A stretch of 32,000 nt of DNA, from contig NW_008806277.1 in assembly GCF_000400465.1 (NCBI RefSeq), positions 210,001-242,000 on the forward strand, given 5' to 3'. The notes under the pieces were generated by a model. The model was not told the origin of the DNA. It was given only the letters and a program-made list of their open reading frames with translations, and did not search any database. The number at the start of each line of letters is the position of its first letter. Within the stretch, counting starts at the first letter, position 1. Source of the DNA: Wallemia ichthyophaga EXF-994. Taxonomy: Eukaryota > Fungi > Basidiomycota. Positions 4,036-25,877 of this stretch are shown here, piece after piece. The position numbers and the translations under genes were made by a program.

Positions 4036-4674
4036 ATGAGTAGACTGGAAATTTTAAACGGCGATAATTTTAGATTTGATGGTAGGAAGCCACTCGAGTT
4101 TAGGTCTTTAAATTATAAGTTGGATGATAACAACGTTTACTTCAATCAAGGCCTGACTAAGTTGAAAGTTAACATAAGCGGTTATCACAACTTCAATAAG
4201 CAAGATATCAATATATCCGTCAACAACGTCAACTCGAACCTCTCTAAATCAAAAATTGAAAACCTTATCCAGCAATTGAAGTCCACATTCCTCTCCGTCA
4301 TCAGATTCCACTCAAAGTCATCAATACAAATCAATATAGACATATTGAACTTTGATGGTAGCTTACTATCAACCGCCATAAACGCATTATCACTTTCTTT
4401 ATCTTTAAACGGCATCGAACTACTCGATATAGTCACTTCAACAAATATTGGTGTTTTCAACAATAACCTTTTAATAGACTTGAATAATTTCGAAGAACTA
4501 GATTGCCCTTCAATAACTCTAGCCTCTTTATCTAATTTTGAAAGTTTATCTTTAATTAATCTTGATTCAAAGCTACATTCCTCCTTCTTATCTGACATCA
4601 TTTCTCTATCTACTTCGAGTAATCAAGTATTGAGAGATGATTTGTCCAGTATTTTGTTGTCAAATGCTGTTTAA
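4036..4674 (+). CDS. SKI6: Exosome RNase PH-like subunit Ski6/Rrp41 (divergent), 212 aa
   Basis: N-terminus MSRLEIL...RFDGRK..EFR; RNase PH motifs I.IDIL..DGS...AINA.SL.L and LLIDLN.FEE. Confidence 0.8.
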   Translation: MSRLEILNGDNFRFDGRKPLEFRSLNYKLDDNNVYFNQGLTKLKVNISGYHNFNKQDINISVNNVNSNLSKSKIENLIQQLKSTFLSVIRFHSKSSIQINIDILNFDGSLLSTAINALSLSLSLNGIELLDIVTSTNIGVFNNNLLIDLNNFEELDCPSITLASLSNFESLSLINLDSKLHSSFLSDIISLSTSSNQVLRDDLSSILLSNAV

Positions 4675-5575
4675 GAACTCCGTTAATGCATTCATCGTTC
4701 TATTCACATCATTGTCCTGCCAAACATTAACTCTCATCCCACCCTTGAATACGATGAACATGGTCGGTTGATACTCATTAACACCTAATATACCTCCAAT
4801 TTCCTTATTCATCATCACATCCAACCTCATGAACCCGTTGTTCATTCCAGGAATTCCTCTTTGAGCAGCTAAATGGTAGAATGCTTGTGATAATTCAACG
4901 CTATTCGATGAATATGTCGTCAATGGTGATACCTTTATTCCCTTTCAATTTCATAATACTCTATACCACGCAACTCACCGTCATCAGAATGGCTTTGTAA
5001 TTACTCATGATTATATTCTGCATCATCTCCTTTGAGATTACATTCAGCGTCGGCCATTGTGGTAAAACATCTGCTGATTGATATTGCGAATTGGGTATCA
5101 TGGGTAGATTCATTCGAATGTTATTTCTGGCATGATCATTTCCCACTCCTCCACCAAGTGCAGCCTGCGTCCCTACCATTCCTGTACCCCCAATTCCCCC
5201 GAAAGACCCCACACTTCCTGCATTGATGAATTCTGGAAACTTAGCTCCACAAAGAAAGTCGATTGCTTTGTCTGTGAACGTATTTCCATTCCTGTACGCC
5301 ACGTTGTAGCTTCCTGCGTTGAACTCACTACAAAGACCATCTAAAAAGTCCTTATATGTGTCCTCGTCTATTTCTGTAATCCCAGTATTGATGACTCTAG
5401 ATGGCGTCCCTTTGTAAGAGCTGCCCGGTGGTGCCAAGGACCTGATGCCTTCATAACTAAACTCAAACTCTCTATTGAATACCACAACGGTTGTGTGACT
5501 TCTCCCGTTACTGCTCAAGTACCTTATTGCCTCGTTGCTCCAATCATAAATGGCTATTTCGACCTTATTTCCCAT
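4660..5575 (-). CDS. PPPDE/DeSI peptidase-fold plus thioredoxin-fold protein lacking both catalytic cysteine motifs, about 289 aa; probable exons 5575-4979, 4932-4660
   Basis: V.IAIYD..., HTTVVV..REF, G.P..VI..G.TEI, SYN...RNGNTFT...FL.G..P resemble PPPDE. The C-terminal part (RLDV...GV...PTMFIVFKGG.RV..W) resembles thioredoxin. Putative 46-nt intron 4978-4933 has a strong donor but a weak branch site. Confidence 0.72.
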
Positions 5576-6509
5576 GATGGTATTAATTGTGATATTAAGT
5601 GGTTAATTGTATTTGATTATTGGGTTGTACAAATTAAATGAGCAACGTCGCGATCGCGCTATCGCTGGCGTGTTGATTGTTCAAACAAGAGTACGATAAT
5701 CGTCATTAGTCCAGTTTCTTGCTGAATTTTCTCCCTGTTGATCCCTGTTGAATATAACTTGTTTTGTGTACTCGTGTGTACAACCACAATGGCTCTTTTT
5801 CATTGCCTCCGCTTGGTCACAAGTACCAAAAAAATGAATACGTAATTTGAATGGCTACTTAATTTTGTTTAGTTGTCAAACGACTGTAGGGATGCAACAT
5901 AAAGTGGAGGTCACCTCAGCTTATTATACGATGGCTTACATTTTCAAACTTTCCTAGCTGTTAATTACAAGACAACACCATATTCATCCATACATGAAAC
6001 TTATTGGGGGTTGTCATGTACGTATCTGTAACATAAGATTCTCGGCGTGAAGATTCGAAGACTTTTCAGCGTGAATAAGATCGGCATGGATAGCGACGTG
6101 GATAAATTAAATTGTAGAATGCTAAAATTCACTAAAAATTTGGACAGCTCAAATAATCGAAGTCACACTGCGATGGATCTGATTGGCAGTACTCTAAGCA
6201 AACATCGAACTCGATTAGTGAGCTAGTTTAGGTCCACAAGGAGAAGTTTTAATAAATTGTATAATTAAAACCATTTCAGGCTGATGTTTAAGCAGCATAT
6301 TATACGTCTTTGTAAGAGAAAAGAAGTAAATAAACTGAGTGACGGATGACAAAGTGATTATATGGAATTTTGATTAGAGGCGGCCTAAACGAGATCGGTT
6401 AGCAATCTATGGGTGAGTAAATACTATTAGATGGTATGATATTCTTCAAACGTTGATGATAGATCAAAGCAGCCTCAATGAGTGCTCGTGATGTCATCCG
6501 AAAACTCCG

Positions 6510-7030
6510 AAGAGTGACTGGAAGTGAGAACCTACTGTATATACTGTACTTTTGAAATCAAGGACGGAATGAATTTACATTTCAAAATGCATGCATTCAG
6601 TTAATTTGTACTGGAAATGACCGAGAGGGAAAACAGTATGGGTTCAGCACAATCATACAGCATTGAGATTTATATTACAAAAAGTAAGCAAGGATAACAT
6701 GCTTAAAACTAAGCGCATTAACGATGTAAAAGCACGGTGGACGACATCCTACTTGCTCTGAGGCTGTTGGGACGCCATACGCGCTCTATCTCCATATCGC
6801 CCTTCCACCAGACTAAACTGCTAAATAGAAACTGCAACTTTCATTTACAATTTAATTTGATTTATTTACATATTCGCTATACTAAACATTCTCTTAATCC
6901 ATCAGCCTGACACTTACAAGACTAGCTAAAATCTTCAGTGTTCAATGGAGAAGAATTGTTAGAGTGTACTATGGGCAATCAAAATCGAAATTAAAGGATT
7001 TAGTAGTGAACGGTATAACTTAAGAAGTCA
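6510..7030 (+). repeat. Old degenerate inverted repeat, left copy (pairs with about 13245-13785)
   Basis: Anchor 6800-6820 matches the reverse complement of 13461-13481 at 20/21. Further collinear anchors fall on one anti-diagonal (coordinate sums about 20275-20296). Boundaries are approximate. Confidence 0.75.
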
Positions 7031-7408
7031 TATGGCTATACACATGCTGGATAATCTCTAAACGATGCAAATGAAATCTGAAATGCAGGCGGAAGAGCAA
7101 ACACTGAAATTGTTTTTGATCAAAAGTCTCGGATCACCATACATAAATCAGTGAATAAATGAAAACTTTCGATAATGCGTGAAATACGTAAGTATGATAT
7201 TAAATAACGCCAATGCTAAGGTTCGTTTGTGTACTTTGCAATCTAAAACAAGGGAAACATCATTTACAAATCAGAAGTACGATAGATATAAAATAAGATA
7301 GTATAATTAGGTAGAGTTAAAATGTAAACGGCCGAAACCAAAAGTAAGTCAAGCCTGTTGATTTCTAGGAAATAGAAAGTCGTCATACACTAGCCAGAAT
7401 CGTAATAG

Positions 7409-9011
7409 CACCGCTATGAATATCACAAAATGAGTACAAAAGGTTAGGTCACTATAAAAGGCAAATGAAAAGTGACCTGACTCGACATCTATGTGGCCCT
7501 TTCGTCTTGTATAAAGTCGAAAATCGCATTACACTGATTAAGAGTGTAATTATCAAACTTTTCAGTAATTTGGAATGTAATATTTCAGGATAGATAAGGC
7601 CCGAATGGGAAATAATCTGATTCAACATGAGTATTAACCAGGCCCTAACAAAACTCGCAGATCCTTATGAAATTGTATGTGATGAGATTAATTTGATATT
7701 TGTCTTGTTTTGAGTTGAGCGTGTTTATTTGGCTTGTGCATAGATAGATTAGCCAGATTGAAGGGCCAAATTGTAGAAAAGAGCCAAATAACAAGCCGTT
7801 AAGGTATCTGACACAGCTACTGCTGGATCTATTGATCCTTAGCTCGTCGCTAGTTTATAATCACCACCGAATTAATGATCGAAAGAGGAAGCTAAGTGTA
7901 ACACAGGTTTAAAAGTAGTTTACTCTCAACAGAAGAGATCGGTTTGTATTTGAAAGACTATCACTGCGATTGAAACATACGGGGAATTGTCTTTTCTGGG
8001 CGAGATGCTTCCTCATCACAGTTATAAGAATTACTTAATGATAAACAGATGAACAAAATGTACTCTTGCCATATGTAACCACAAACGTATGCAAATATAC
8101 ACATTAGAGATCAAGTCGTTACGTAGAACCTTTGAGGGCGAGTCACGATTGAATTTCAGGTCCAATTATAGAGAATATCAAAAGAAACTGACTATAATAT
8201 TTTAAAACTGACTTATTCATTGTTCAATTTGGGAGATGCACACTAGTAGACTTTAAGGGTGCAACATTGGAAAACGTTGGGGTTGCTCAACATAACATTT
8301 CTAATTTGGCTAACCGCTAGATAAAAAGCTAGACCAACCCAATAGCAATTACAAAGTGTAGCCCACCGAGTTTTAATTCAGAAAAGCTCATGATTAAATA
8401 CAAATTCTGATAGTATCATACATCGTTTCAAAGTAAAAACGGTTGGAAGGCTAGCTTACGGTACAATTACAGCTGAAGATAAAATGATTACATCTAATAA
8501 AACTACAGATCGCAAATCACCTGAGACCAACAAAATACAGAAACATTAAGCAATAGTACTTGTAGCGTGATTAGTAAAACCGTAAACGTTCATGCTTCAG
8601 CCCACTACAGGTAATCACTAAAAAGGTGGCCTTCAACGAAATGAGACACGAAAGTAAGAAATATAAAGTTTTCAAAACCATTGTAAGTTTCCAAATAAAG
8701 TGAAGGTCGTATTCAAAGCTACATTATTAATGATCAAACGATCACTATACCGAGATGAGCAGGTGTGAAAACTCTCATTTTCTGAATGAGACATAATTAC
8801 GAAATAAACTGCTATAACTTCCATCAAACAACTTCATGTTGGAAAGAAAAGCTACGCGAAAGCAGCATTATTTGCCAGACGTTCCCTATGGGATTTTAAG
8901 AACGTTAGTGTTGAGCTAAGACTTCATTCGAAAGATAGTGTTAAGAACCATTCGTTGATGTGAATCTTTTGCACATAAACTGTACATTTTAGGACCATTA
9001 TCGCAAGTCAT
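7409..9011 (+). repeat. Long inverted repeat, left arm (1603 bp)
   Basis: Line-by-line reverse-complement comparison with 10091-11693 gives a constant coordinate sum of 19102 and 5 mismatches (7539, 8897, 8900, 8992, 9008), about 99.7% identity. Confidence 0.97.
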
Positions 9012-10090
9012 CATAGAGATCCAGTTATCTTTAGATTCTTTGCATAATGTCATTTCGAAACTAAATCAGACGCGAGATAGATAATTTTCGGCTCGTTATA
9101 TGTCATTGTCATAACGGCACAAGACTTTTTTCACATTACCTTTCTATATCTATATAAGATATTCAGAATAGAAAAAGTTAAAAGTTGAAATGTCAAGTAA
9201 TATAAGACAATTAAGTTTAACAGCTACTCCTAAAGTACGCGATTTAAATTCTAGTAACAACTTTCATCTCCCCTTGATTAACGACATTTGGATTGAGGCA
9301 TGGTTGAAGTAACACTTACAATGTCGAGATAATGAATTAAAAATTCAAAGTTGAGTTTATCGATTAACTCAGAATTGCATCATTTCAAGAATTTTTAAAA
9401 GAGATATGCACCTTTTTTTTTTCAACTTATAGACTTACAAATCAATAATCTTCAAACACACATATTAGAAGGAGGCAGGATCTAGCTATATACTTACCAT
9501 ATAATCGTTACTGGATGCCCTCAGCCTTTGAGAGAAACAAACAAAATCATTTATTTTTTGGGCTTGAGTGATCAATTGTTTTTAACTTTATTGACATTAA
9601 TAGCCTGAATTTATCACAGGAAGTTGTTTCCTCTTCCTTTTGTTGTAAAAGAAAGACCAGGTTATTTTAAACGCAAACAGGTTTTTGTCGAAAATGTTCC
9701 CTATTTTTGAAAACACAGGCTTATTTAAGCATTTGATTGAGAATTTCTTTCAATCATCCTTCGATCAATAACTCAATTTAAAGCAGATCAACGCCAAATC
9801 CCCACTCACTAACAATCTGACTGTTAGCATTGAATTGTGAAATTTTGATGTCAGAACAGATTTCTGTTACAAATGAAGTACAGATCACCATTTCACATTT
9901 AAATTCTAGCAAAAGCACGAAATTAATAACGAAGTTAGGTCCAAAGCAGTGCAAATCATTTACATTTATCAGATGATGTAAATGTGATTGAAATATATAT
10001 TTTTTTGCTAATGTCTTCCTCACATCACATTAGCACTATTCGTGCCGATGGAAAAAAATAACGGAGTCCAATGATTCGTGGAGATTCAAA
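9012..10090. other. Unique AT-rich core (1079 bp) between the IR arms
   Basis: No internal palindromy seen; poly-T/A runs; sampled lines are about 22-30% GC; no credible ORF. Confidence 0.85.
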
Positions 10091-11693
10091 ATGGCTTGCG
10101 ATAATGGTCGTAAAATGTACAGTTTATGTGCAAAAGATTCACATCAACGAATGGTTCTTAACACTATCTTTCGAATGAAGTCTTAGCTCAACACTAACGT
10201 TGTTGAAATCCCATAGGGAACGTCTGGCAAATAATGCTGCTTTCGCGTAGCTTTTCTTTCCAACATGAAGTTGTTTGATGGAAGTTATAGCAGTTTATTT
10301 CGTAATTATGTCTCATTCAGAAAATGAGAGTTTTCACACCTGCTCATCTCGGTATAGTGATCGTTTGATCATTAATAATGTAGCTTTGAATACGACCTTC
10401 ACTTTATTTGGAAACTTACAATGGTTTTGAAAACTTTATATTTCTTACTTTCGTGTCTCATTTCGTTGAAGGCCACCTTTTTAGTGATTACCTGTAGTGG
10501 GCTGAAGCATGAACGTTTACGGTTTTACTAATCACGCTACAAGTACTATTGCTTAATGTTTCTGTATTTTGTTGGTCTCAGGTGATTTGCGATCTGTAGT
10601 TTTATTAGATGTAATCATTTTATCTTCAGCTGTAATTGTACCGTAAGCTAGCCTTCCAACCGTTTTTACTTTGAAACGATGTATGATACTATCAGAATTT
10701 GTATTTAATCATGAGCTTTTCTGAATTAAAACTCGGTGGGCTACACTTTGTAATTGCTATTGGGTTGGTCTAGCTTTTTATCTAGCGGTTAGCCAAATTA
10801 GAAATGTTATGTTGAGCAACCCCAACGTTTTCCAATGTTGCACCCTTAAAGTCTACTAGTGTGCATCTCCCAAATTGAACAATGAATAAGTCAGTTTTAA
10901 AATATTATAGTCAGTTTCTTTTGATATTCTCTATAATTGGACCTGAAATTCAATCGTGACTCGCCCTCAAAGGTTCTACGTAACGACTTGATCTCTAATG
11001 TGTATATTTGCATACGTTTGTGGTTACATATGGCAAGAGTACATTTTGTTCATCTGTTTATCATTAAGTAATTCTTATAACTGTGATGAGGAAGCATCTC
11101 GCCCAGAAAAGACAATTCCCCGTATGTTTCAATCGCAGTGATAGTCTTTCAAATACAAACCGATCTCTTCTGTTGAGAGTAAACTACTTTTAAACCTGTG
11201 TTACACTTAGCTTCCTCTTTCGATCATTAATTCGGTGGTGATTATAAACTAGCGACGAGCTAAGGATCAATAGATCCAGCAGTAGCTGTGTCAGATACCT
11301 TAACGGCTTGTTATTTGGCTCTTTTCTACAATTTGGCCCTTCAATCTGGCTAATCTATCTATGCACAAGCCAAATAAACACGCTCAACTCAAAACAAGAC
11401 AAATATCAAATTAATCTCATCACATACAATTTCATAAGGATCTGCGAGTTTTGTTAGGGCCTGGTTAATACTCATGTTGAATCAGATTATTTCCCATTCG
11501 GGCCTTATCTATCCTGAAATATTACATTCCAAATTACTGAAAAGTTTGATAATTACACTCTTTATCAGTGTAATGCGATTTTCGACTTTATACAAGACGA
11601 AAGGGCCACATAGATGTCGAGTCAGGTCACTTTTCATTTGCCTTTTATAGTGACCTAACCTTTTGTACTCATTTTGTGATATTCATAGCGGTG
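10091..11693 (-). repeat. Long inverted repeat, right arm (1603 bp)
   Basis: Reverse complement of 7409-9011. Pairing stops abruptly at both ends (after ...CATAGCGGTG at 11693 and before ATGGCTTGCG at 10091). Confidence 0.97.
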
Positions 11694-11914
11694 TAATTTT
11701 CCTACTGATGAATGCTTAATGTGACTTTAGTTCACACAAAGACCTCTTGTTACACTCTTCCTGTTGCTAAAATCTTAACTAACTCTTTCTTCAGACATGA
11801 AACATTAATGCCATCATGCATTAGGGGGTTCCTTACCTGAGAGATTTCTGTAACTCTTTAGTAGGGCTATCACTCCCTGAACCCCAATCGCGTTCGAAGT
11901 TGTAGAAGTAAGTT

Positions 11915-12325
11915 CGTACTTTTCGATCTTTTCTTTGTACGTGTTGTTTGGTACCAGTTCTTGGTATGATTACGATACGTGTACAAAAGTTATGAATTTC
12001 AAAATGTCATTTTCGTACGCCGTAAAATATATCGAAGGTATTCGACCTGACAAAATATAAAGTGGATACCGATTGATAGTTTCATTTAAATGAATTTTTA
12101 TTCGATAATAATTATAATTCTCATTGTATTCCAGGGAGCACAGCACGATATAGTACCCGTACTTTTCGTACAGTGAGATCGAAATGCGTACAAAGTTAAC
12201 GTCTACGGTATGAGTACAAAATTAAATAATCTGTATGAGTGCAACATTACAGAATGTTTATTAATTTGTACAATTCAATTAAAGCCAATGATGAGCTGCA
12301 CCAGAGTCGAACTTGCTTCACGTAC
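11915..12325. repeat. Cluster of 12 GTAC-core motifs, loose consensus TTTTCGTAC / CGTACAAA
   Basis: GTAC at 11916, 11937, 11951, 11981, 12015, 12153, 12159, 12168, 12188, 12214, 12268 and 12322, plus one at 12612. CGTACTTTTCG is repeated exactly at 11915 and 12158. Confidence 0.7.
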
Positions 12326-13244
12326 GAAATTACGTTTAGTGATAGCACTACTGTTCAGTAGCACTGTATTGCAGTTCCCTAAACTCTTTGAAAATGCTTG
12401 TAAGGATTCTAAACGTAGTCTGTGTATCAATAAGAAGCTTCGATGTTTGAAGTCAATGCCTCGTCGAGATTACTTAGGGTGTAAAACTGCAGATTGCTGC
12501 GCCAAATAATTTACGTATTGGACTTAAAGTTCTAAGTTATTGATCTTCGTAATGTAATCTAATGCCTTGTCCCTTTCCTACTACCTATGAAGAGCAAAAC
12601 CCGGGTTTCACGTACAAATTTCGCTGTCAAGCCTGTGCTTTTTAAGTTACTGTGTTAACTGAGCTGTTCAACGAAGGTTAATGTATCTGCTGATTCGTCA
12701 GCTATAAGCTTGTATGCATGCGTAGCTTGTTCGCGCAAGTGGCGTCTTTTTTTTCTCTTGTTCCGATTTGTTTAAGCGTTCTTTGCGAGTGATATCACTA
12801 GGCGTGTCTGGAACTTTCTGCGTAATTTCGCCCAACAGTCTAATCCATGTAATCGAAACAAGTCTCAGATTTCTATTCGTATCGGGTTTCTTGCACGATT
12901 ATCCTCTGTTTATGAGAATAAAACATCAGGCCCAAAGCCATTCTCTTCTTCCCACTTTTCAGTTTACCTTAGCCTACAATTTTTAGTACTTTTTAACAAG
13001 TGCATGTCTGTAAGGTTCTAGGAAAGTCTTGACATGTTTTCAAGTTAACTCTCTTTTCTGTGCATGACTTGGTCTGGACATATTTTAGTAGCACGCTGCT
13101 GCTTTGGATGCTTTGAAGGTCTTACGTTAGTACCTATAGCTAGATATAGTATTACATTGATGGGTGGTGGGGACACATTTTAATGCAATGATTATTTCCT
13201 ACACCATGCTTTCTTCAGACATAGCACCCACTACTATAATTCAT

Positions 13245-13785
13245 GTAATTCTTAAGTTTTTGTTGGTATCACTTAATGTTTTGATTCCATTACACAGAAA
13301 CGATTTAACAAATTGTCTAAGTTCCATATTGCTGTGTTGAGGAATTGCTTGTACAGCGATAAAACAGATAGAACAAATTTAATAAGTGAGATTAATCTGA
13401 AGTATGTCATGAGGAAAGGCGTGTTTGTACAGTAAATGTGAATTGTAGAACTCCATGCTTCAGTTTAGACTGGTGGAAGGGTAATATGAAGAAAGTTAGA
13501 CGTGAGGTGGCGCATGTGGAGTGCCAAAAGCCTAGCAGCAAGAGGAATACCATCCATCGTGCTTCTTTTTGTTACCGCGTCTTATAATATATTTTTGACT
13601 CTTGCTTAGTTTGTATAAAATACATCTCAACAATTTGCAGAATGTGTCGGGCCCAGCGGTGTTCCCTTCCGGTCGGTTTTCAGTACACCCTGACCTAATG
13701 CACGCATCTCAAAATGTGGTCTTTTGCTGATTCCTGATTTCAGAGAATGCAACAGGCGCAATCGGCTCTCACTTTTGGTCACGTT
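13245..13785 (-). repeat. Old degenerate inverted repeat, right copy (pairs with about 6510-7030)
   Basis: Anchors: TTCTTAAGTT (13249), CAGTTTAGACTGGTGGAAGGG (13461), CCAAAAGCCT..AGCAAG.AGGA, CCATCGTGCTT, CTTGCTTA, ATCTCAA, CAGTACA (13681), AATGCA.GCAT, TGATTTCA, CTCACTT..GTCAC (about 13766-13782). Confidence 0.75.
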
Positions 13786-14132
13786 CTAGTTTTTCTAAGT
13801 ACCGGTTTCATGAATATCATGATAGATTACCTTTAGCGCAATCTTGGACGGCACAAACAAGCCTAAATGAGATAACTACCTTGATGACAACATAATGCAG
13901 AGAAAGATATGTTCAATATCAGTACTCTCATATTAATTCGCAACCTTTATGCTTGTCGTATCGAGACTGTTGAGCAATTGAATAGGCTTGAATTGAGATT
14001 TTATCTTATTTTATAAATTCGTTAGTAATTATGCGATGGGTGGGTGGGTGTAGCGATCAATACCAGCTGCGGACGGTCGTATAGTCTAGAAATTTTTTAG
14101 GATGAGACAATGAATCATATCTCGATAACTAT

Positions 14133-15235
14133 CTATTTAAAATAATCCGGTAATATGTAGGACAGTTTCTCTTTCGACTCCTTCGTGAATTTGTCTTTGG
14201 ATGTAACAATGCTAAATTGCATGGAGCCATTCTGGGAAGGAATCTTGTTGGCTGATATTGCATCATGAACATGTTGCAAAACATTTTGGGCCACGAATTT
14301 TGAGTTTTCAGCGTTAGTGGTTAAAGTTTTGATCACTTCAGCGACTGTTACAGGCTCTTCATTCATTCTCCATGCATCATAGTCTGTTGATGTGCAGATG
14401 AGCGAGTACCCTAATTCTGCCTCTTTAGCCAATTTGGCTTCAGGAATAACGGACATATTAATAATATCAGCTCCTAATTGTCTGTACATCCTAGATTCGG
14501 CACGAGTAGAGAACTGAGGACCCTCCATACAAACTAGTGTAGAGTCGCGATCACCATGGTTAGTATGCAGATTCAAACCTGATGGTAAAACTTGCTTGAC
14601 AAGTGGGGCAATAAAAGACGATAGCTCAGTAGTAAAGGGTTCACCAAACATAGCATGGGCAACTACTCCCTGATTCAATCCAAAGTAAGTATGCTGTCTA
14701 ATGGACTTTGTGCGATCGATGACCTGGTTCGGAATAATGAAGTCACCTGGCTTGATCTCCTCTCTGAGAGAACCCACAGCAGAAAAGGCAACAATGGCCT
14801 TAACGCCTACGTGTTTCAAAGCAGCAATGTTAGCTTGACCATTAACTTCAGATGGAGTAATGGAGTGATTGATGCCATGCCTAGCGATGAAAGCAATCTG
14901 AGCTCCTGACGGAAGAGCAAGAATCATTACATTTGAGCTTGGTCTACCCCAAGGCTAGGAGAGAAATAAGAAGGCTGGAGAAAGGAGAAGAAGAGACTAA
15001 CTGTTTGAACACCGACATCCTTGACATGCTTCAAACTGTCAAGCTTGTAGAATCCGCTGTAATCTTGGTTAGAAAATTATGGAGTATAACGGGACAAACC
15101 TTCCACCTGTAAGAGAAATGCTTGAGTACAGGCAGAAACATAAGCAGAAGTAGGGAATTACCAATAACACCAATTAAAGGATCTAAAATATGTAAGCTTA
15201 GCTTAGTTTCCAAACACCGCCAACTCACTCGTCAT
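14133..15235 (-). CDS. MEU1: S-methyl-5'-thioadenosine phosphorylase (MTAP), about 303 aa; exons 15235-15229, 15182-15162, 15106-15100, 15056-15002, 14954-14133
   Basis: Spliced N-terminus MTNPLIGVIGGSGFYKLD...TPWGRPS; motifs [51 protein letters not shown]. Four 43-55-nt GT-AG introns give a continuous frame. Confidence 0.93.
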
Positions 15236-16670: not shown

Positions 16671-16796
16671 ATTGAAATAGCATCGATAAATTTTTTTTAA
16701 TGCACTTGAATAATTTCGCGGATTGAAGGCTGCCATTACAAAACCAAATAAAGTGAGTAGAGAGGATTGAAGAGTAATCATCTGACGAAAGTAAGG

Positions 16797-17394
16797 ATGT
16801 CAATTGAGGAAATCCAAGAAAACGTAGAGAACCTTAACTTCAGCGAACCAGGTCCTTCAAACGCAGCTACACAGAGTCGTGCAGAGAAGAAGGCCAGACA
16901 AGCGCTTCAAGGTCATGGATTGAAAAAGGTCCCAGGTGTCACCAGAGTCGTTCTCAGACGCTCACGTAATGTCATGCTCGTAGCATCGAACCCAGAAGTG
17001 CACACGGCACCAGGCTCAGGTATCCACATAGTGAGTTGCTGTCAAAATGAAGTAAAAAAAGATTACTGACGAGGATTAGGTCTTTGGTGAATTTAAGGTG
17101 GAAGACCCAAGCCAATTACAAGCCGCACAAGGAGAAGCTCCAGAAGGCCAAGACAAGTCAGAATCAAAGAAGCCAGAAGAGATCATGTCAGAAATGGACA
17201 CCCAAGCGGCAAACATTTCTGAAGCAAAGGGCAAAGACGTTGAAGACGAAGGAGAAGTAGATGAAACTGGCGTCGACGCTAAAGATATCGAGCTCGTTAC
17301 TGCACAAGTAGGCTGCACACGCGCTAAAGCAGTAAAGTCGCTCAAGGAGAAGAATGGGGATTTGATTAACGCCATAATGGCAGCCTCCGACTAA
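16797..17394 (+). CDS. EGD2: Nascent polypeptide-associated complex alpha subunit, about 182 aa; exons 16797-17030, 17080-17394
   Basis: NAC domain ([12 protein letters not shown]...[11 protein letters not shown]...IVFGE.KVED) and C-terminal UBA ([18 protein letters not shown]...GDLINAIM). 49-nt intron. Confidence 0.9.
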
Positions 17395-17576
17395 GGACAA
17401 AATTTTGACAGTACATATCGAAAAACAATGTTTATTTAGAAATAAATGAATTTAAAATAAAAAGAAGAGAGTGTGAATATTTGAATAGATATGCATTCCA
17501 AACTAAATAATTCAACATTCATAACTCCGTACTGACATGAGGCGGTCAGTGCTTGACGTTCTTGGACCAAATCATC

Positions 17577-18911
17577 ATGGTGCAATCCATCTCAGAAGCT
17601 GAATCTATTGGCATACTCAACCTGCCAAATCAGCGCCATAAGAGTAATTCCTTTCTCTGTGTCCGTCATGCCCAGCTAACGCTCTCTAGTTGGTTAGTTG
17701 CCAGGTCATCACGCTAACAAACCAATTAACTGTACCGTAGTCGCAAAGCGTGGTGGACATTTCACTATAATGGTCGTCGGTGAATCTGGCCTCGGAAAGG
17801 TTAGTAGAATTGTACGTGACACGCTTTTCTAATCACGACTATCAGTCTACACTCATCAACACACTCTTTTCCACTGAGCTTTCCGCTAAGAAGGATTACC
17901 GTCGCCGCCACGCCAAGCAGCTCGACAAAACTACTGAGATTGAGATTATCAAAGCGTACGTTTATTTATGTCTTAGATATGTCTCTGACGTGCTTTAGTG
18001 AATTGGAAGAGAAGCAATTTAAGGTTAAGCTCACTGTCATCGATACCCCTGGCTTCGGTGATTACGTTAACAACCGTGATAGCTGGTCTCCAATTATTGA
18101 TTTCATTGATGATCAGCATGAGTCTTATATGCGTCAAGAGCAACAGCCAAACCGTCAGGAAAAATCTGATATGAGGGTACACGCTTGTTTGTACTTTGTT
18201 CGTCCAACTGGCCACACACTTAAGCCACTGGACATCGAAATCATGAAGAGACTTGGTACGCGTGTCAACCTTGTTCCAGTAATCGCAAAGGCAGATACCC
18301 TTACTCAGGCTGATTTACAGTCATTTAAGAAGCGCATCTGGGAGGTCATTCACGCTCAAGGTATCAAGATATATCAACCACCTGTTGAATCTGACGATGA
18401 AGGCAACCAACAACACGTTCAAGACCTCATTGACTCTTTGCCATTCTCAATCATTGGCTCAACTGAGGATGTGAAGAATGGTGAAGGAAAGCTTGTGAAA
18501 GGAAGACAATACTTATGGGGTGTGGCTGAGGTTGAGAACGAGCAGCACTGTGACTTTAGAAAGTTAAGACAGCTCCTCGTTAGGACGCACATGCTTGATC
18601 TGATCAATACCACTGAAGAAACGCACTATGAGCACTACAGACAAGCACAAATGGAAACGAGGAAATTTGGAGAACCAAAACCAAAGAAGCTTGACAACCC
18701 AAAGTTCAAAGAAGAAGAGGAAGCTCTCAGAAAGAGATTTACTGAACAAGTTAAGTTGGAGGAAGGCAGATTTAGGCAGTGGGAGCATCACTTGATGGCT
18801 GAGAGAGACAGATTGAACAAGGATCTCGAAACTTCTCATGGACAAATCAAATCAATTGAGTCAGAGTTGGATGCAATACAAATTGGCTATGGCCGCTCAC
18901 AACGCCGTTAA
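17577..18911 (+). CDS. CDC12: Septin, Cdc12/Spn4 group; exons 17577-17643, 17690-17692, 17741-17799, 17846-17955, 17999-18911
   Basis: NLPNQRHKIVAKRG, G1 GESGLGKST, G3 DTPGFGD, G4 AKAD, GRQYLWG.AEVENE.HCDF, and C-terminal coiled coil EEEALRKRFTEQV..EE.RFRQWE..L.AERDRLNKDLE typical of the Cdc12/Spn4 group. Confidence 0.92.
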
Positions 18912-19214: not shown

Positions 19215-21910
19215 ATGGAGGAATAGTGAGTGTATCGGCTTGTGATTCTTATTCTAATAAATTCATAGTGCACCGCTTACACCAACATCAATCCCTTCGC
19301 CCACAACTTCCTCAAAGGAGTTATACAACTACGGCTTACAGTACCCTCCCACTCCCAAACAACACAAGTCAAATTGCTTGCCAGAATCCTCTAATCATGC
19401 TGCCACCTTAAATTCATCTAATCCACCTTTGTTGAAGCTCCTTGGTATTCCACAAACAGGTGCTAAATCTAGAGTCGAGACTCAAATCAAGATCATTCTC
19501 CAGCTTGAGAACATTCCCAATAATCAATGGAACTTTATCAGACTTCCCTATGGCTCAGCTTCGAAAAAGAGATCTAAGAGAGGTGCACCAATGCCTTACG
19601 ATGTACCTAGGCACAATACCCTCTATCTGGAAACCCAAGTCAACTGTGCAACTGCTCCTTATTGTCCCGTCTATGCTTGTTCTCCTTGCAAAGAACGTGA
19701 AAAGAAGCGTTTCCAGCGTAAACGTGATGCTAGAAGACGTCCAAGATCGAAATCTGATGATGAAGGTCAAGACGACGCTCTACTCAATTCCGCTCCCTTA
19801 CCCGTTAAAGATCAATGGGAGCGTAATAAGATTACACTCTTCAATTGTGGTGAACTTGTCCCTCTCAGTGAGGATATCGCTTATGAAGGTGCTCAACCAT
19901 TGCCAACCGCTGTTCTTCCAACGCGCGTCACTTGTTACTGTAGGCATCACCGTGAAAAGACCGGTTTTACAATAGGCTTTACCCTCAAGCAACACGATGG
20001 CAGCGTTGTTGCATCAAACAAATCACCACCGATTATGATCACGGATGATCACAAGACCTCAACAGGTAAAACGTCTAATTACGGTGAGCAAAGCTCAATC
20101 AAATGTCGCAACCCATTGAAATCTACAAGAGGTATCAAAGATGACGCTCTACTTGCTCAATCCGATACCAATGACAGAAAACCTTATACGAGAAATACTA
20201 GAAGGCAAAACTCACCTTTGGAGATAAATCTCGCCAATAGTTCTAGTCAATCATTCGTATCACCATCTGATTACTCAATGAAGAATGCCCTCAACACCAC
20301 TCCCTCAACAACCCCCAGTCCACCCAGGAGCATCAAAAAGTCTTTGATAGGAGACCTTGAAGGCTCAGCAGGCTTACCCAAAACCTTGGAAGAGTCTCTC
20401 GTCAAGTTTGAACATACTGATGAGCTCGAGACGTATTTGACGTCTAGCTTGAGTGTGCAATCACCTATACAGTTGAATGATTCAGCTAATACGTTAGATG
20501 AATCCAATTCGAAAGGCAACAATCCAACGTTTGATTCAGAAGTAGATAAATACATCGAAAGTTCTTGGGTGGATGATGGTATTAGCAGAAACGAAAGCAT
20601 TAATATATACAATGGTCCGAAAATTTCTAGAGTTGTACCATTTGAGGGACCTACAAGGGGTGGTACAGAGATTACAATCCTCGGTCAACACTTTCCCGAT
20701 GGGTTGACTGTATACTTCGGTTCAAATGCTGCATCTAGGGTCACGAGATGGGGAGAATGTACACTAGTATGTTTGTTGCCGCCTTCGTCCAAGCCTGGGA
20801 CTGTAAGCGTCTCATTAAGAGGATATAATACGAGCGATGAACAACATGGAGACAATCCATTGACTTTCACGTACATCGATGAATCGGATAAAGCTTTAGT
20901 TAGTCCCTTCTCTTTCACGTATTTCAAAGCTGACAATCACCTAGATGGAGCTCGCCTTAAAAGTTCTTGGTTACAATCTCACAGGTAAATATGAGGATGC
21001 AAGAAACGTTGCAATGAGAATCGTGGGAACCGAGAATGGCGAAGGGCAAGTGGATGATAAAGCAAGCAATACTTTGAGTGCCACCAACTTTGATCTTGAA
21101 GCATTCACAATTAATGCGCTACGATTGCTCGATTACAGACAGAACGTCGATAGTTTAAACCTTCTCAATAAACAAAGACAGACGATACTACATTTATCCT
21201 GTCAATTGTCAATGGTGGAACTGACTCAAAGCCTGATTGAATGTGGTGCAGATGTAAACGCAAGGGACATCAATGGATTCACACCGTTGCATTTCGCTTA
21301 CATCAGTAAATCTGAGAATTGCGCAAGAATGTTGTATAATAGCGGCGCAGATGTTGAGGTTGTAAACGCTTGCGGTATTTCTGCAAAGGAGCTTGGTGAA
21401 CTTACGTACTCGAATAAGCTCTCGATACAAGACAGTGAAGACGCTGATGACGAAATCAACTTCTCAAGCGCTGAGGACGACTCGTCATTAGATGATAGAG
21501 TAAGTAAAAGCAACTTACTGCAATCAAATGACAGAGGGACGATTAAAGATCTTGAAAAGAAGGATAATGAGGAAGAGATTGGCTACCAAGAGAAGGCACT
21601 TGAAGTGTTTTTAACAAATCTTAGTACAAAGCTAAGTGAAAAGACCGGTTGGAATCCCGCTGGCACCACATCTCGCTTTACTAAAGTGGAAATGGAAGCA
21701 AATGGAGAAAGTCTCGTCGATGAGGAGGATTGGTCAACGAGAGCAAAGAAAAGAGCGCAAAGCGTCGTTGAGGACGTCCGCCTAATGTTGTTTTGGGCAC
21801 CGGTGCTGCTTTTATCCTTGGTTTTCTCGTTCATCTCAATAGCACCGTTCATTAATAGGGTCGGTAACCAACTAGCACCACTACTAGGACTACAAGCAAA
21901 TTCTGAATAA
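19215..21910 (+). CDS. Spt23/Mga2-like membrane-bound transcription factor (DNA-binding domain, IPT/TIG, ankyrin repeats, C-terminal TM)
   Basis: KSRVETQIK, RVTCYCRHHREK.GF, PIMITDDHK, IPT (ISRVVPFEGPTRGGTEITILG), MELALKVLG, ankyrins (QTILHLSC, NGFTPLHFA), hydrophobic C-terminus. Introns after the MEEY exon and at 20899-20944. Confidence 0.88.
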
Positions 21911-21995: not shown

Positions 21996-23971
21996 ATGAG
22001 AGTTGCTGTGGTTGGATCCGGTATCAGCGGGCTTAGTGCTACATGGGTTAGTTCTATCGGCTGTGACATGAATACAGATTAAATTTGGTATAAAGCTCCT
22101 TAATGAGTATAGTGACGTTGAAGAGGTACACATCTTCGAAGCCAACAACTACTTTGGAGGACACACGAAGTGAGTGCATCGAAAGACGTGTGAGTTTTAA
22201 TCATATTGTGGAATACAGTACCGTGGAATTCAGCAAAGGCGACAACGATAAGAGTGTTGATGTAGATACGTAAGCTTTGCCACAGTGAGGAAAACAAATC
22301 TAAAGCAGATCATCACAGGGGATTCATAGTATTTAAGTGAGAATAGTCACTTAACTTGGTTTCGTATAATAATGGTTGATAGTGAAGTGACGTATCCGAA
22401 TATGATCAAGATGTTAAACTTGAAGGGAGTCCCGATCATTGATTCCGATATGTCATTCTCAGTATCGAGGAACTCCGGCTCTTTTGAATGGTCAGGGTCA
22501 GGTTTGAATGGCTTATTTGCTCAAAAGTCAAACATCTTCAACCTTGATCATTATGCCATGATTTTGTAGGTCCGATGATTATCGATAGCCTTAATTTTGA
22601 CGTCATAAAAGTGATATAGTTCGATTCAATGCGCTGTCTTTGGACTTGCTAGATGAAAAAAACAGTATGTCCGATATTACGATCGGCGATTACCTTAGGA
22701 AGGAGAAGTATTCGGCAGCATTCATTAACAATTACCTCATAGTAAGCTTCTTTTCTCACAACATGCCATTCCCATTAAACATAATTCGTAGCCAATGAGT
22801 GCAGCTATTTGGAGCACACCACCTGATTCTGTAGCTTTAGATGTCGGTGGTGCTTTATCTCTCGTGCTTCCAAGCTAACGATTATCTTAGTTCCCAGCCA
22901 GTACTCTTATTAGATTCATGTTAGTGGCTTTTCAACGGTGAAATCAACTAAATGACGTCAACAGGCACAACCACCATTTACTTCAAATAGCGGACAGAAC
23001 ACAGTGGTTGACGATAAAAGGAGGATCGTAGGTTTGTTTTCATTGTTTTTCAAATAGTTTTAATTAAACGGTTAGTAAATACTACGTTAATGAGATCATC
23101 AAGAATATGAAGGAAGGAACAACACATTTGTCAACACCTATAAGTAGTCTCAGACGTCTACATAATGGGACAGTTGAGCTTTCAACCGCAAACGAAGATA
23201 CATGGTTTTTCGATCACGTCATTCTCGCTACACATGCTGATACTTCTATGTCAATTATCAATGAAGACTTGAGTGAAAAGGAAAAGGGTCTTTTGAGCAA
23301 CTTTAAGTTTTCTAGTAACGAGGCTGTACTTCATTACGATGAGAAGGTGTGCTAATTAGCTCACAGCATACACTTTAACCAAATACTCACAGCTCATGCC
23401 GACAAGAAGAGAAGCATGGACTAGCTGGAACTTTTTGAGCAATGCTGACGAGAAATCTAACGTTAATAATCAAGTTTCATTGTGAGTTGATACTTTTATA
23501 AAGAAATTAGACAATGACAACATTCCAAGAACGTATTGGATGAACTTATTACAAAGTTTGAGTGAAGAGAATTATGGAAATGTTCTAGTAACACTGAATC
23601 CACCACTCGAACCAAGAGAAGATTGTGTTATTGGTAGATGGAGCTATGAACACCCTTTGATAAGCGCTGATGCGGTTCAAGCTCAAGGTCCGATGAATGA
23701 AATACAAGGTAAAGATGGGTTAAGCTTCGCAGGTGCATGGTTGAAATATGGGTTCCATGAGGATGGCTTTATATCAGGTTATAATGCCGTAAAGACAATA
23801 AATGGCTTGACAGTAGCGGCACCATTTGATTTAATTTCACCTGAAAGACAGGTAGATCAGGTTAATGCACAAGTACGATTTATGCTCTACATACTGCAAT
23901 ATCTGAGAATGAACAAGGTGTTGATATCATTTGTAGTGATTATCGCGTCTGTTTACTTGTCAATTGATTAG
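21996..23971 (+). CDS. FAD/NAD(P)-binding amine-oxidase-fold protein (COG2907-like), many short introns
   Basis: MRVAVVGSGISGLSA (GxGxxG), EA..YFGGHTNT, DVDTGFIVFN..TYPN, SDMSFSVS, FDHVILATHAD, N.AVLH.D, SWN, YEHPL, FAGAW..YGFHEDGF.SG, reconstructed across introns. Confidence 0.85.
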
Positions 23972-25877
23972 ATAGTCTATTATTATAGTGTTCAATATTG
24001 CTTGATAGTCTCGATAAACCGTTTTCAGATAGACTCAGCCGATTGTCCTCTAATTGAGAAGTGATTTGATGATAATTCAATGAGTTCCCACCACTAATTC
24101 GTGTCAAACAGTCCAATAAGGCAATCTTGTTGTTGTATTCGGAAAACAGTGCAACGAAGGCGACCATGGTCTCTAGATTTTCATTGGGTATCTTATGACT
24201 GAAAAGATTTTCAACAATGTTCAAAAGTGGTCTATTGAATAGATTAGATTTGTCGAGTAAATTATGTGATATAGTCAGATGCAGGAGAATTGAATGCCGT
24301 CTATAAATAGTGAGGTGATTGTATTTAGCTAGAAGGTAAAGTTGATAATTTAATTGTGCAAGGTTGATGGTTTTACTGTTTATTGTGTGATCTAAACATC
24401 TTAATATTATGGACTTTGATGGTTTATGATGACGCGACTTATCTAATTTGATTAATAAATTAGCCACAGGACGATCGACTAATATGTGAAATTTGATGAT
24501 GATTTCTAGGAAAGGCAAAGGATCGATACTTCTTTCATTGAGATCGATCAAAATTTTATCGATCAAGTCAAAGGACTGGGTATTCAATAATTGATTAATC
24601 AAAGTGCCATACGTTTCACTAGTAGGATGTAGACCTCTATCTAAAGCGTAATTGAATAGTTGAAAGGCTTGAGAAGGAGAGTTTTGAGCTATTGATAATA
24701 AAGATAAATTGATATCCTTCAAGTCAGGCATGATAGATCTGGATAGTAGATGACGAAAGACGGCCAATGAAGCGCTAGAGTTGCCTAAATATAGACACAT
24801 TCTTGATAGAGCGTTTAATTGGATGTGATTATAATCTGAAGGTTTAGAATCCTTCAAGTAATTATCAAAGATAAGATTAGCTAGTTTGAAATTATCAGAG
24901 TTACCCTTTTGGTTTGTTAGAAGCCTTATGATTGATAAAGTGAGATTTGAAGAATGTGTTGGAGATAATTGAGATGATGGTAAGTTAGGATAAGCGAGTT
25001 TGATGATGTCAGATTGATTTAATTTACAGCAATTAATGAGAATTGAAGATTGAATGGATGGTTCCAGTAGATTGAATTTATTAGTCTCTAATAATGATAG
25101 GGTGAAAGCTTTGTGATTAGATTTTAGATTCTGGGAGGATAGATGGTTGGATATTGTTAAAAGAGATAGTTGCGGAGGTGTGTAAGTATCTTTAACTTTT
25201 AAATAAAGCTTGTATAAGTTGTTGTTGTTGTTATTGTCCTGTAATTCCACCAATAAACGGAATAAACCATCAAAATGAGTTGTAGGGAGTTGATAATCTA
25301 ACTTGATCAAGTACTTTAATAGTAGATTGATAGCTGATTTATCGCCATCCATGATAAAATGACTCATAATAGTATTTAATAAGTTATCTTTGTAGTCAGT
25401 GGATGATGAACATTTTAGTAGTGAAGATGAGTATCGTAATGCTAGATCGCCTTTACCATAACGTAAAGAGATTAAGCAGGAATAGTTGAGAATGATAAAT
25501 TTAATGTTATTCAGGTTATTCGAATCGTTAATATTATTGATATGGTTAGTGAAACCAGAGTCGTTTAGATGATTAAATAGAGATTGTGCTATTGTCAAAG
25601 AGTTTTTATCATCAGAGTTAATAAGCCATAGAATAACATTTAAGCAATCATAGAGTGAATCATAATTCTGATAATTGATTGTGAAAGGTGTGGATGGAAC
25701 CGATGAAGTCAAGAATGGTTTAAATCTATCCAAATTTTGATTTATAGTTTCCAATTTTTCATGCAATTGATTGTAATTTGATAGACTGATAGATTTATCA
25801 CCAAAAACCAACGTTCTGAATGATCTATTGATACTAAATTTAAACTTCTTATCGATTAGTCTATTCAAAATTCTCAT
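23940..25877 (-). CDS. Intronless 645-aa protein with probable degenerate PPR repeats (putative mitochondrial RNA-binding)
   Basis: Long open frame with PPR-like helical repeats (SIMPDLKDINLSLLSIA; GLHPTSETYGTLINQLL) and a basic, presequence-like N-terminus. Confidence 0.6.
   Translation of the reverse strand: MRILNRLIDKKFKFSINRSFRTLVFGDKSISLSNYNQLHEKLETINQNLDRFKPFLTSSVPSTPFTINYQNYDSLYDCLNVILWLINSDDKNSLTIAQSLFNHLNDSGFTNHINNINDSNNLNNIKFIILNYSCLISLRYGKGDLALRYSSSLLKCSSSTDYKDNLLNTIMSHFIMDGDKSAINLLLKYLIKLDYQLPTTHFDGLFRLLVELQDNNNNNNLYKLYLKVKDTYTPPQLSLLTISNHLSSQNLKSNHKAFTLSLLETNKFNLLEPSIQSSILINCCKLNQSDIIKLAYPNLPSSQLSPTHSSNLTLSIIRLLTNQKGNSDNFKLANLIFDNYLKDSKPSDYNHIQLNALSRMCLYLGNSSASLAVFRHLLSRSIMPDLKDINLSLLSIAQNSPSQAFQLFNYALDRGLHPTSETYGTLINQLLNTQSFDLIDKILIDLNERSIDPLPFLEIIIKFHILVDRPVANLLIKLDKSRHHKPSKSIILRCLDHTINSKTINLAQLNYQLYLLAKYNHLTIYRRHSILLHLTISHNLLDKSNLFNRPLLNIVENLFSHKIPNENLETMVAFVALFSEYNNKIALLDCLTRISGGNSLNYHQITSQLEDNRLSLSENGLSRLSSNIEHYNNRLSNQLTSKQTR

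Follow-up and report, generated by a model that had tools for sequence, protein, structure and literature searches.

A 32,000-nucleotide stretch of the Wallemia ichthyophaga EXF-994 genome (KE007227.1:210001-242000, here called the window, to which all positions refer unless another sequence is named) contains a near-identical inverted repeat (IR) whose 1.6-kb arms enclose a unique AT-rich core of about 1 kb, within 8.6 kb of DNA that is free of genes. Our analysis tentatively identifies this locus as a candidate for the small regional centromere, of the IR-core-IR type, of one W. ichthyophaga chromosome, a reading to which we give a little less than an even chance. "Candidate centromere" is a fair label for the locus, whereas "centromere" is not established, and the link to chromosome segregation is one that we infer.

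Inverted repeat, core, and gene-free surroundings

The repeat lies at ∼217.4 to 221.7 kb of a 553-kb scaffold, placing the locus (217 to 222 kb of 553 kb) in the scaffold interior. The window is 100% identical to KE007227.1, matches the reference assembly GCA_000400465.1 base for base over 13,398 nt, and contains no Ns; the product of its 391-aa ARMT1 ORF is 100% identical to a W. ichthyophaga protein. An initial annotation, made from the letters of the window, had spoken of a basidiomycete-like fungus, and rightly so: W. ichthyophaga, a salt-loving species, belongs to the Wallemiomycetes, an old sister group of the Agaricomycotina (PMC3849046). Its 9.6-Mb genome has 45.35% GC, is 73.6% coding with 514 genes/Mb and 1.67% repeats, and is represented by a reference in 82 scaffolds that was built from short reads (PMC3849046).

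A repeat search of the window found a single long repeat, the inverted pair at 7404-9038 and 10064-11698, whose extended arms of 1,635 nt are 99% complementary and 1,025 nt apart; no long direct repeats were found in the window. The parts of the structure are as follows.

Left arm: 7404-9038 (strict limits 7409-9011), plus strand; near-identical IR.
AT-rich unique core: 9039-10063, 1,025 bp (1,079 bp between the strict arms), no strand; GC fraction 0.313.
Right arm: 10064-11698 (strict limits 10091-11693), minus strand; near-identical IR.

A base-by-base check of the strict arms, 1,603 bp each, revealed five mismatches (7539, 8897, 8900, 8992, and 9008) and no indels, reproducing to the base the arms given by the initial annotation; its unique 1,079-bp AT-rich core likewise held up. 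All but one of these mismatches fall in the 115 bp next to the core. Outside 7404 the similarity between the arms is random, which gives the repeat a sharp outer edge, while on the core side it fades over ∼27 bp. The sequences flanking the two ends of the IR (...GAATCGT/AATAG and TAATT/TTCCTAC) share no direct repeat and thus show no target-site duplication. Within the gene-free interval, GC is lowest in the core (GC fractions of 0.357 for the arms, 0.359 for the whole interval, and 0.389 for the window). A/T runs of at least 6 nt occur at 4.9/kb in the core versus 0 to 0.8/kb in arms, flanks, and genes, an enrichment of about tenfold.

The whole structure is housed in an interval bounded by two genes.

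Left boundary gene: 4660-5575, minus strand; PPPDE/Peptidase_C97 (Pfam PF05903, E value of 2e-20; gene model L001:7824-8739), with its start codon toward the interval.
Gene-free interval: 5576-14132, 8,557 bp, no strand; from the PPPDE start codon (5575) to the MTAP stop codon (14133).
Right boundary gene: 14133-15235, minus strand; methylthioadenosine phosphorylase, MTAP (Pfam PF01048; gene model L013:10001-11103), with its stop codon toward the interval.

Here L001 denotes the locus in the reference assembly and L013 the contig SPOM01000038.1 of another strain, annotated with MAKER. The MTAP product is 100% identical to the W. ichthyophaga protein P0121. The genes nearest to the IR arms are 1.8 and 2.4 kb away.

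Between the two boundary genes there is no open reading frame (ORF) of at least 100 amino acids (aa), no gene model in either the reference annotation (L001) or the MAKER annotation (L013), and, in a search of all six frames with stops masked as X, no Pfam domain at an E value of ≤1. The stop-codon density of the interval equals the random expectation, and its longest ORF does not exceed that of shuffled sequences. Searches of the interval also returned no Rfam family, even at an E value of ≤1, no tRNA, no tandem repeats, and no telomere repeats (TTAGGG). The earlier claims of 8.56 kb without a credible gene and of no transposase, tRNA, or target-site duplication were accordingly borne out, the latter by the six-frame Pfam search, the tRNA search, and the comparison of flanks. 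Because the genome is so compact, a noncoding interval of 8,557 bp is an extreme outlier: ∼64 kb of W. ichthyophaga sequence from elsewhere contains annotated gaps of 16 to ∼1,470 bp, and the interval is at least 5.8 times as long as the next largest. Set beside these gaps, the initial description of the flanking genes as 0 to 150 bp apart is roughly right.

The interval shows no mutational signature of repeat-induced point mutation or of methylation (CpG observed/expected of 0.93 and TpA of 0.83). A telomere-fusion scar was rejected as its origin, TTAGGG repeats being absent. With no Rfam or Pfam matches, an origin from nuclear mitochondrial DNA or from rRNA is also unlikely.

When the left flank was aligned by blastn to the reverse-complemented right flank, a second, degenerate IR emerged outside the first.

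Outer IR, left copy: 6501-7031, plus strand.
Outer IR, right copy: 13206-13793, minus strand.

It aligns as two collinear, inverted pieces, 6501-6848 with 13793-13432 (64.6% identity over 367 columns, E value of 1e-29) and 6850-7031 with 13383-13206 (61.8%, E value of 7e-7), together ∼530 bp at ∼64% identity. Since gaps break the frame, the outer IR is noncoding. The left copy lies 0.37 kb from its arm and the right copy 1.5 kb from the other, and this unequal spacing indicates that indels have accumulated between the two layers. Two IR layers of such different age show that inverted-repeat architecture is long-standing at this site.

Strain comparison and homogenization of the arms

Assemblies of 21 further W. 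ichthyophaga strains were built by IDBA-Hybrid with k values up to 120 (PMC6738226). In four strain groups, contigs carrying the left flank end at position 7527, which is 119 nt into the arm starting at 7409, and 119 is k-1 for IDBA-Hybrid at that setting. When reverse complemented, the last 119 nt of these contigs match the right arm as well, and a right-flank contig of another strain ends at the mirror position. In a more divergent strain group, the breaks fall at 7535 on the left and 11567 on the right (SPOM01000038.1), which are exact mirror images. Over five strains other than the reference, the left-flank contigs stop at 7527-7535, 119 to 132 nt into the arm. Thus, in independent strain assemblies, both unique flanks enter one shared sequence in opposite orientations, and contig breaks at k-1 within each arm imply that the repeat and its boundaries are species-wide. 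We conclude that the IR, with conserved boundaries, is present in all strain assemblies examined; no presence/absence polymorphism of the locus was seen among them.

The same contigs bear on how the arms evolve. In the divergent group, the left arm carries 7493 G>A (contig L002) and the right arm the mirror change, 11609 C>T (L013); over their terminal 119 nt the two contigs do not differ, and both reference arms carry the alternative base at 7493/11609. In another strain (contig L004), 7477 C>T falls within the 120-mer that, given where the contig ends, is necessarily common to both arms. The reference arms differ from one another by 0.31%, about fourfold below the difference between strain groups in the flanks (1.2 to 1.3%, versus ∼0.5% in the genic part). 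Because the repeat is common to both strain groups, arms evolving independently would be expected to differ at no fewer than ∼20 sites; 5 were observed (Poisson P of ∼7e-5). Paired substitutions and low divergence between the arms, read together, lead us to conclude from these alignments that the arms are homogenized by gene conversion. Since gene conversion maintains it, the near-identity of the arms is no evidence of youth.

Strains also differ by indels in the flanks of the IR, with a 5-nt insertion at 7287 (L003) and a 4-nt deletion at 13810-13813 (L013). The deletion adjoins the right end of the outer IR copy at 13206-13793, just outside it.

The candidate centromere and its alternatives

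In a working model of a centromere at this site, CENP-A nucleosomes and the kinetochore would assemble on the unique core, rich in A/T runs, and then spread into the 1.6-kb arms. Arm-to-arm recombination would keep the arms nearly identical and could flip the core, and the surrounding 8.6 kb would be gene free since transcription units would not be tolerated there. Three properties expected of an IR-type centromere are found: a near-identical IR (1,603-bp arms) around a unique core of at least ∼1 kb (1,025 to 1,079 bp), a multikilobase gene-free region (8,557 bp) in a compact, 73.6%-coding genome, and arms that recombine, as indicated by paired substitutions and by 0.31% versus 1.2 to 1.3% divergence. 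A retrotransposon-rich centromere does not fit, with reverse transcriptase, RNase H, integrase, and gag domains absent in six frames.

The closest resemblance is to the centromeres of Komagataella phaffii. There, IRs of 2.0 to 2.7 kb with 0 to 1 differences surround a mid region of 0.88 to 1.33 kb within 6 to 9 kb of nontranscribed DNA, the sequences are unrelated between chromosomes, and the arms recombine; Cse4 binding, early replication, one such locus per chromosome, and core-inversion polymorphism have been shown (PMC5010909). Shared with our locus are the near-identical inverted copies of 1.6 to 2.7 kb around a unique region of ∼1 kb, the gene-free or nontranscribed gap of 6 to 9 kb in a compact genome (here 8.56 kb), recombination-homogenized arms, unique sequence, and the lack of transposon content. 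The two differ in that K. phaffii belongs to the Saccharomycotina and W. ichthyophaga to the Basidiomycota, that the W. ichthyophaga arms are shorter (1.6 kb) with five differences rather than 0 to 1, and that W. ichthyophaga has in addition an older IR layer that has degenerated. Centromeres of the IR type are found again in other budding yeasts (PMC4741521; PMC12711049). In Candida tropicalis and in the cnt/imr regions of Schizosaccharomyces pombe, inverted repeats likewise flank a CENP-A core and are maintained by homogenization (PMC4741521; PMC7292649). Unlike the present arms, of which we found no second copy in ∼64 kb of other Wallemia sequence (the loci fetched for comparison), the IRs of C. 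tropicalis are similar between chromosomes, and S. pombe has large heterochromatic outer repeats where our locus has no outer tandem repeats. Nor did that ∼64 kb contain any IR of at least 60 nt.

Among basidiomycetes, Malassezia species also have compact genomes, in which short, gene-free, AT-rich centromeres coincide with synteny breaks (PMC7025860). The likeness extends to genome size (∼9 Mb), a gene-free region of 3 to 5 kb or more, an AT-rich core at a GC minimum (here that of the gene-free interval), freedom from transposons, and an association with synteny breaks. Malassezia centromeres differ in lacking long inverted repeats; they carry an AT-rich motif of 12 bp (PMC7025860). In our profile of the window, the core has 31% GC versus 45% for the genome. 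Centromeres of Cryptococcus/Kwoniella and Ustilago consist of tens of kilobases of retroelements; they resemble our locus as basidiomycete regional centromeres in gene-free regions and differ from it in that only 8.6 kb is involved here, with no reverse transcriptase or integrase relic in any frame. Outside centromeres, the palindromes of sex chromosomes and the IRs of plastids show the same combination of near-identical inverted arms, unique spacer, and concerted evolution. In those systems, arm-to-arm gene conversion protects the integrity of genes that the arms carry, whereas the W. ichthyophaga arms are noncoding.

Several observations weigh against a centromere at this site. We know of no IR-type centromere in the Basidiomycota. 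Because the reference is in 82 scaffolds, repeat-rich centromeres could hide at scaffold ends. CpG is not depleted in the gene-free interval, giving no hint of methylated heterochromatin, and the polymorphism of the flanks is ordinary for noncoding DNA. The GC minimum is not unique in the window either: the PPR-like gene and its upstream region (25 to 26 kb) reach 30% GC, and with a trough as low as the core, low GC alone does not single out the candidate.

A further point against it comes from gene order. On the right side, the order MTAP, 342-aa gene, NAC/septin, SPT23/MGA2, PPR, and rhodanese is syntenic in six Wallemia mellicola assemblies. On the side of MTAP that faces the gene-free interval in W. 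ichthyophaga, W. mellicola instead has a GT22 glycosyltransferase gene after 138 bp, followed by a 269-aa gene and bromodomain, ThiF, cobW, and Rad21 genes, and it shows no corresponding gene-free interval. Because the next gene is only 138 bp from MTAP in W. mellicola, the interval sits at a synteny breakpoint. This in itself speaks for a centromere, since in compact basidiomycete genomes such as those of Malassezia rearrangements often break at centromeres (PMC7025860). The Rad21-cobW-ThiF-bromodomain block of W. ichthyophaga lies on another contig and continues there into unrelated genes, and the bromodomain locus has no comparable gene-free interval, no IR, and no trace of the 269-aa or GT22 gene. 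In a contig from a third Wallemia lineage (Logan), the bromodomain gene adjoins the 269-aa gene as in W. mellicola. Since this lineage keeps part of the W. mellicola-like order, that order is probably ancestral and the breakpoint specific to W. ichthyophaga. The MTAP junction therefore appears to be derived in W. ichthyophaga, and yeast centromeres tend to stay at the same position (PMC12711049). A search for W. mellicola orthologs of the left flank, made with a chimeric query (the RNase PH-like ORF plus two W. mellicola neighbors of MTAP) whose candidate list was swamped by low-complexity words, gave no match and returned the bromodomain family only. We also considered whether the interval could consist of decayed copies of the GT22 and 269-aa genes, the W. 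mellicola neighbors of MTAP, and rejected this, having found no blastn or tblastx similarity and no Pfam match.

Two sequences met in this comparison deserve mention in their own right. The Logan contig SRR25399871_546 (L016, 25 kb) has 77% DNA identity to W. ichthyophaga over 10.8 kb and 62 to 72% to W. mellicola; it represents a third Wallemia lineage, possibly Wallemia hederae or a relative not yet described, and helps to polarize rearrangements. Beside the W. ichthyophaga bromodomain gene, L014:13681-22209 is annotated as one model of ∼2,800 aa combining a dynein light intermediate chain, Methyltransf_8, and a P-type cation ATPase. Almost certainly a merger of several genes, it lies on the opposite side of the rearrangement that is specific to W. 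ichthyophaga.

When the initial annotation proposed a candidate IR-type centromere, it looked to synteny of the flanking genes in sister species as one check, and the W. mellicola MTAP flank does not support a conserved position; the structural case has become stronger. The structure is real and unusual, and the centromere reading is plausible and improved while unproven.

The main rival is an inert inverted segmental duplication in lineage-specific noncoding DNA that reached, or arose from, a chromosomal rearrangement junction. It would be kept only by efficient intrachromosomal gene conversion between neighboring inverted copies, as in Y-chromosome palindromes or organelle IRs, and would have no role in segregation. 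The interval lies exactly where the gene order of W. ichthyophaga leaves that of W. mellicola, the latter seemingly ancestral; concerted evolution needs no selection; flank polymorphism of 1.2 to 1.3% (genic, ∼0.5%) is what neutral noncoding DNA would ordinarily show; and the locus yielded no functional motif, RNA, or domain. However, useless DNA amounting to 8.6 kb is seldom tolerated in a 73.6%-coding genome, and all strain assemblies examined have the locus. In addition, two IR layers of very different age suggest that architecture, beyond sequence, has been retained, and the dimensions are close to those of proven centromeres. We regard an inert palindrome as a serious though somewhat unlikely explanation.

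Alternatively, the structure could be a decayed element, mobile or foreign, that had long terminal inverted repeats (TIRs) and has lost its genes: a foldback or long-TIR DNA transposon, or an integrated linear plasmid (invertron). Its length of 4.3 kb, the sharp outer ends of its 1.6-kb terminal IRs, its GC content below that of the genome, and the lack of a counterpart at the orthologous W. mellicola MTAP flank would all suit such an origin. Yet the target-site duplication expected of class II and foldback elements is absent, as are transposase, polymerase, reverse transcriptase, and integrase domains in every frame, and neither a further copy in the ∼64 kb of other Wallemia sequence nor presence/absence polymorphism among strains was encountered. 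That the arms are nearly identical is due to gene conversion and not to youth, and the older outer IR is not what a single insertion would leave. A decayed element is accordingly improbable.

Less probable still is a locus whose arm-core-arm transcript forms double-stranded hairpin RNA and small interfering RNA, or an invertible regulatory segment that flips the core to switch a promoter. An IR with a 1-kb loop has the right shape for a hairpin transcript, and the core with its many A/T runs could be a nucleosome-free promoter or an origin-like region. Against a hairpin locus, the arms have no homology to any gene in the available sequences, the sole match being 15 nt and due to chance, and no transcript is annotated here, the nearest genes being 1.8 and 2.4 kb from the arms. 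As to an invertible segment, MAT, homeodomain, HMG, and pheromone-receptor (STE3) genes are absent from the window, and with no MAT genes there the locus is not a flip-flop mating-type switch of the Ogataea/Komagataella type.

An assembly artifact is scarcely credible: although the reference was built from short reads, and the placement of the core between the arms and its orientation are taken from that reference alone (orientations of this kind were wrong in the K. phaffii reference genomes [PMC5010909]), the independent assemblies of other strains enter the repeat from both flanks in opposite orientations and break at k-1, the arms carry five fixed differences, and the window has no Ns.

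To our knowledge, centromere DNA has been described for few basidiomycete lineages and not at all for Wallemiomycetes. In line with the statement in the initial annotation that its author was unaware of one described in this lineage, our literature search returned neither a study of Wallemia centromeres nor one of IR centromeres in Basidiomycota, and no ChIP data for Wallemia. It is conceivable, though we would not yet favor it over its negation, that W. ichthyophaga, and perhaps the Wallemiomycetes, possesses IR-core-IR centromeres that arose independently of those in Saccharomycotina and Schizosaccharomyces, a unique gene-converted palindrome on each chromosome, as the first of their kind in the Basidiomycota. 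If so, palindrome-plus-core geometry would seem to be a recurrent way of specifying CENP-A chromatin in compact, transposon-poor genomes, and the nested old IR would represent a centromere renewing itself in place. Should the palindrome bind CENP-A, fungi would have evolved centromeres of the IR type on at least three occasions, including in a lineage outside the yeasts studied so far. Such a finding would speak to the question of whether a centromere can be defined by DNA structure instead of by sequence or heterochromatin, and it would supply a 4- to 9-kb candidate element for stable vectors in an extremophile. If the palindrome is inert, it is still a clear case of noncoding concerted evolution in a minimal fungal genome.

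Neighboring genes and minor observations

Genes in the window include those for L28e, ARMT1 (391 aa), an RNase PH-like protein, PPPDE, MTAP, NAC, septin, SPT23/MGA2, a PPR protein, a rhodanese, and a helicase. Metagenome scans with the PPPDE protein and with a 29-nt pattern from the arms gave no matches.

The RNase PH-like gene is a complete ORF of 212 aa at 4036-4674 (plus strand) with a weak RNase_PH domain (Pfam E value of 9e-9), probably encoding an exosome subunit. It is probably a missed gene, since the reference and strain annotations are empty between PPPDE and ARMT1. Near the left end of the window, a 217-nt segment (96-312) is 93% identical to L001:15232-15444, ∼2 kb beyond the window and within the second gene of a tandem Kre9/KNH pair; in four strains, contigs stop at position 184, within this repeat.

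To the right of MTAP, a PPR-like protein gene at 23940-25877 (minus strand) encodes 645 aa, is rich in Asn and Ser, and has a W. mellicola ortholog of equal length; no exact-protein match to this ORF is on record. The NAC-domain and septin genes at 16767-18911 (plus strand) appear as one MAKER protein of 560 to 584 aa in both W. ichthyophaga and W. mellicola (models L007:6513-8589 and L013:6322-8436), which reflects either a genuine fusion or a merge that recurs between annotations. An SPT23/MGA2-like gene at 19378-21910 (plus strand) encodes a DNA-binding domain, IPT/TIG, and ankyrin repeats in two overlapping ORFs, consistent with an intron near 20.95 kb; in other assemblies it is annotated as one protein of 848 to 868 aa.

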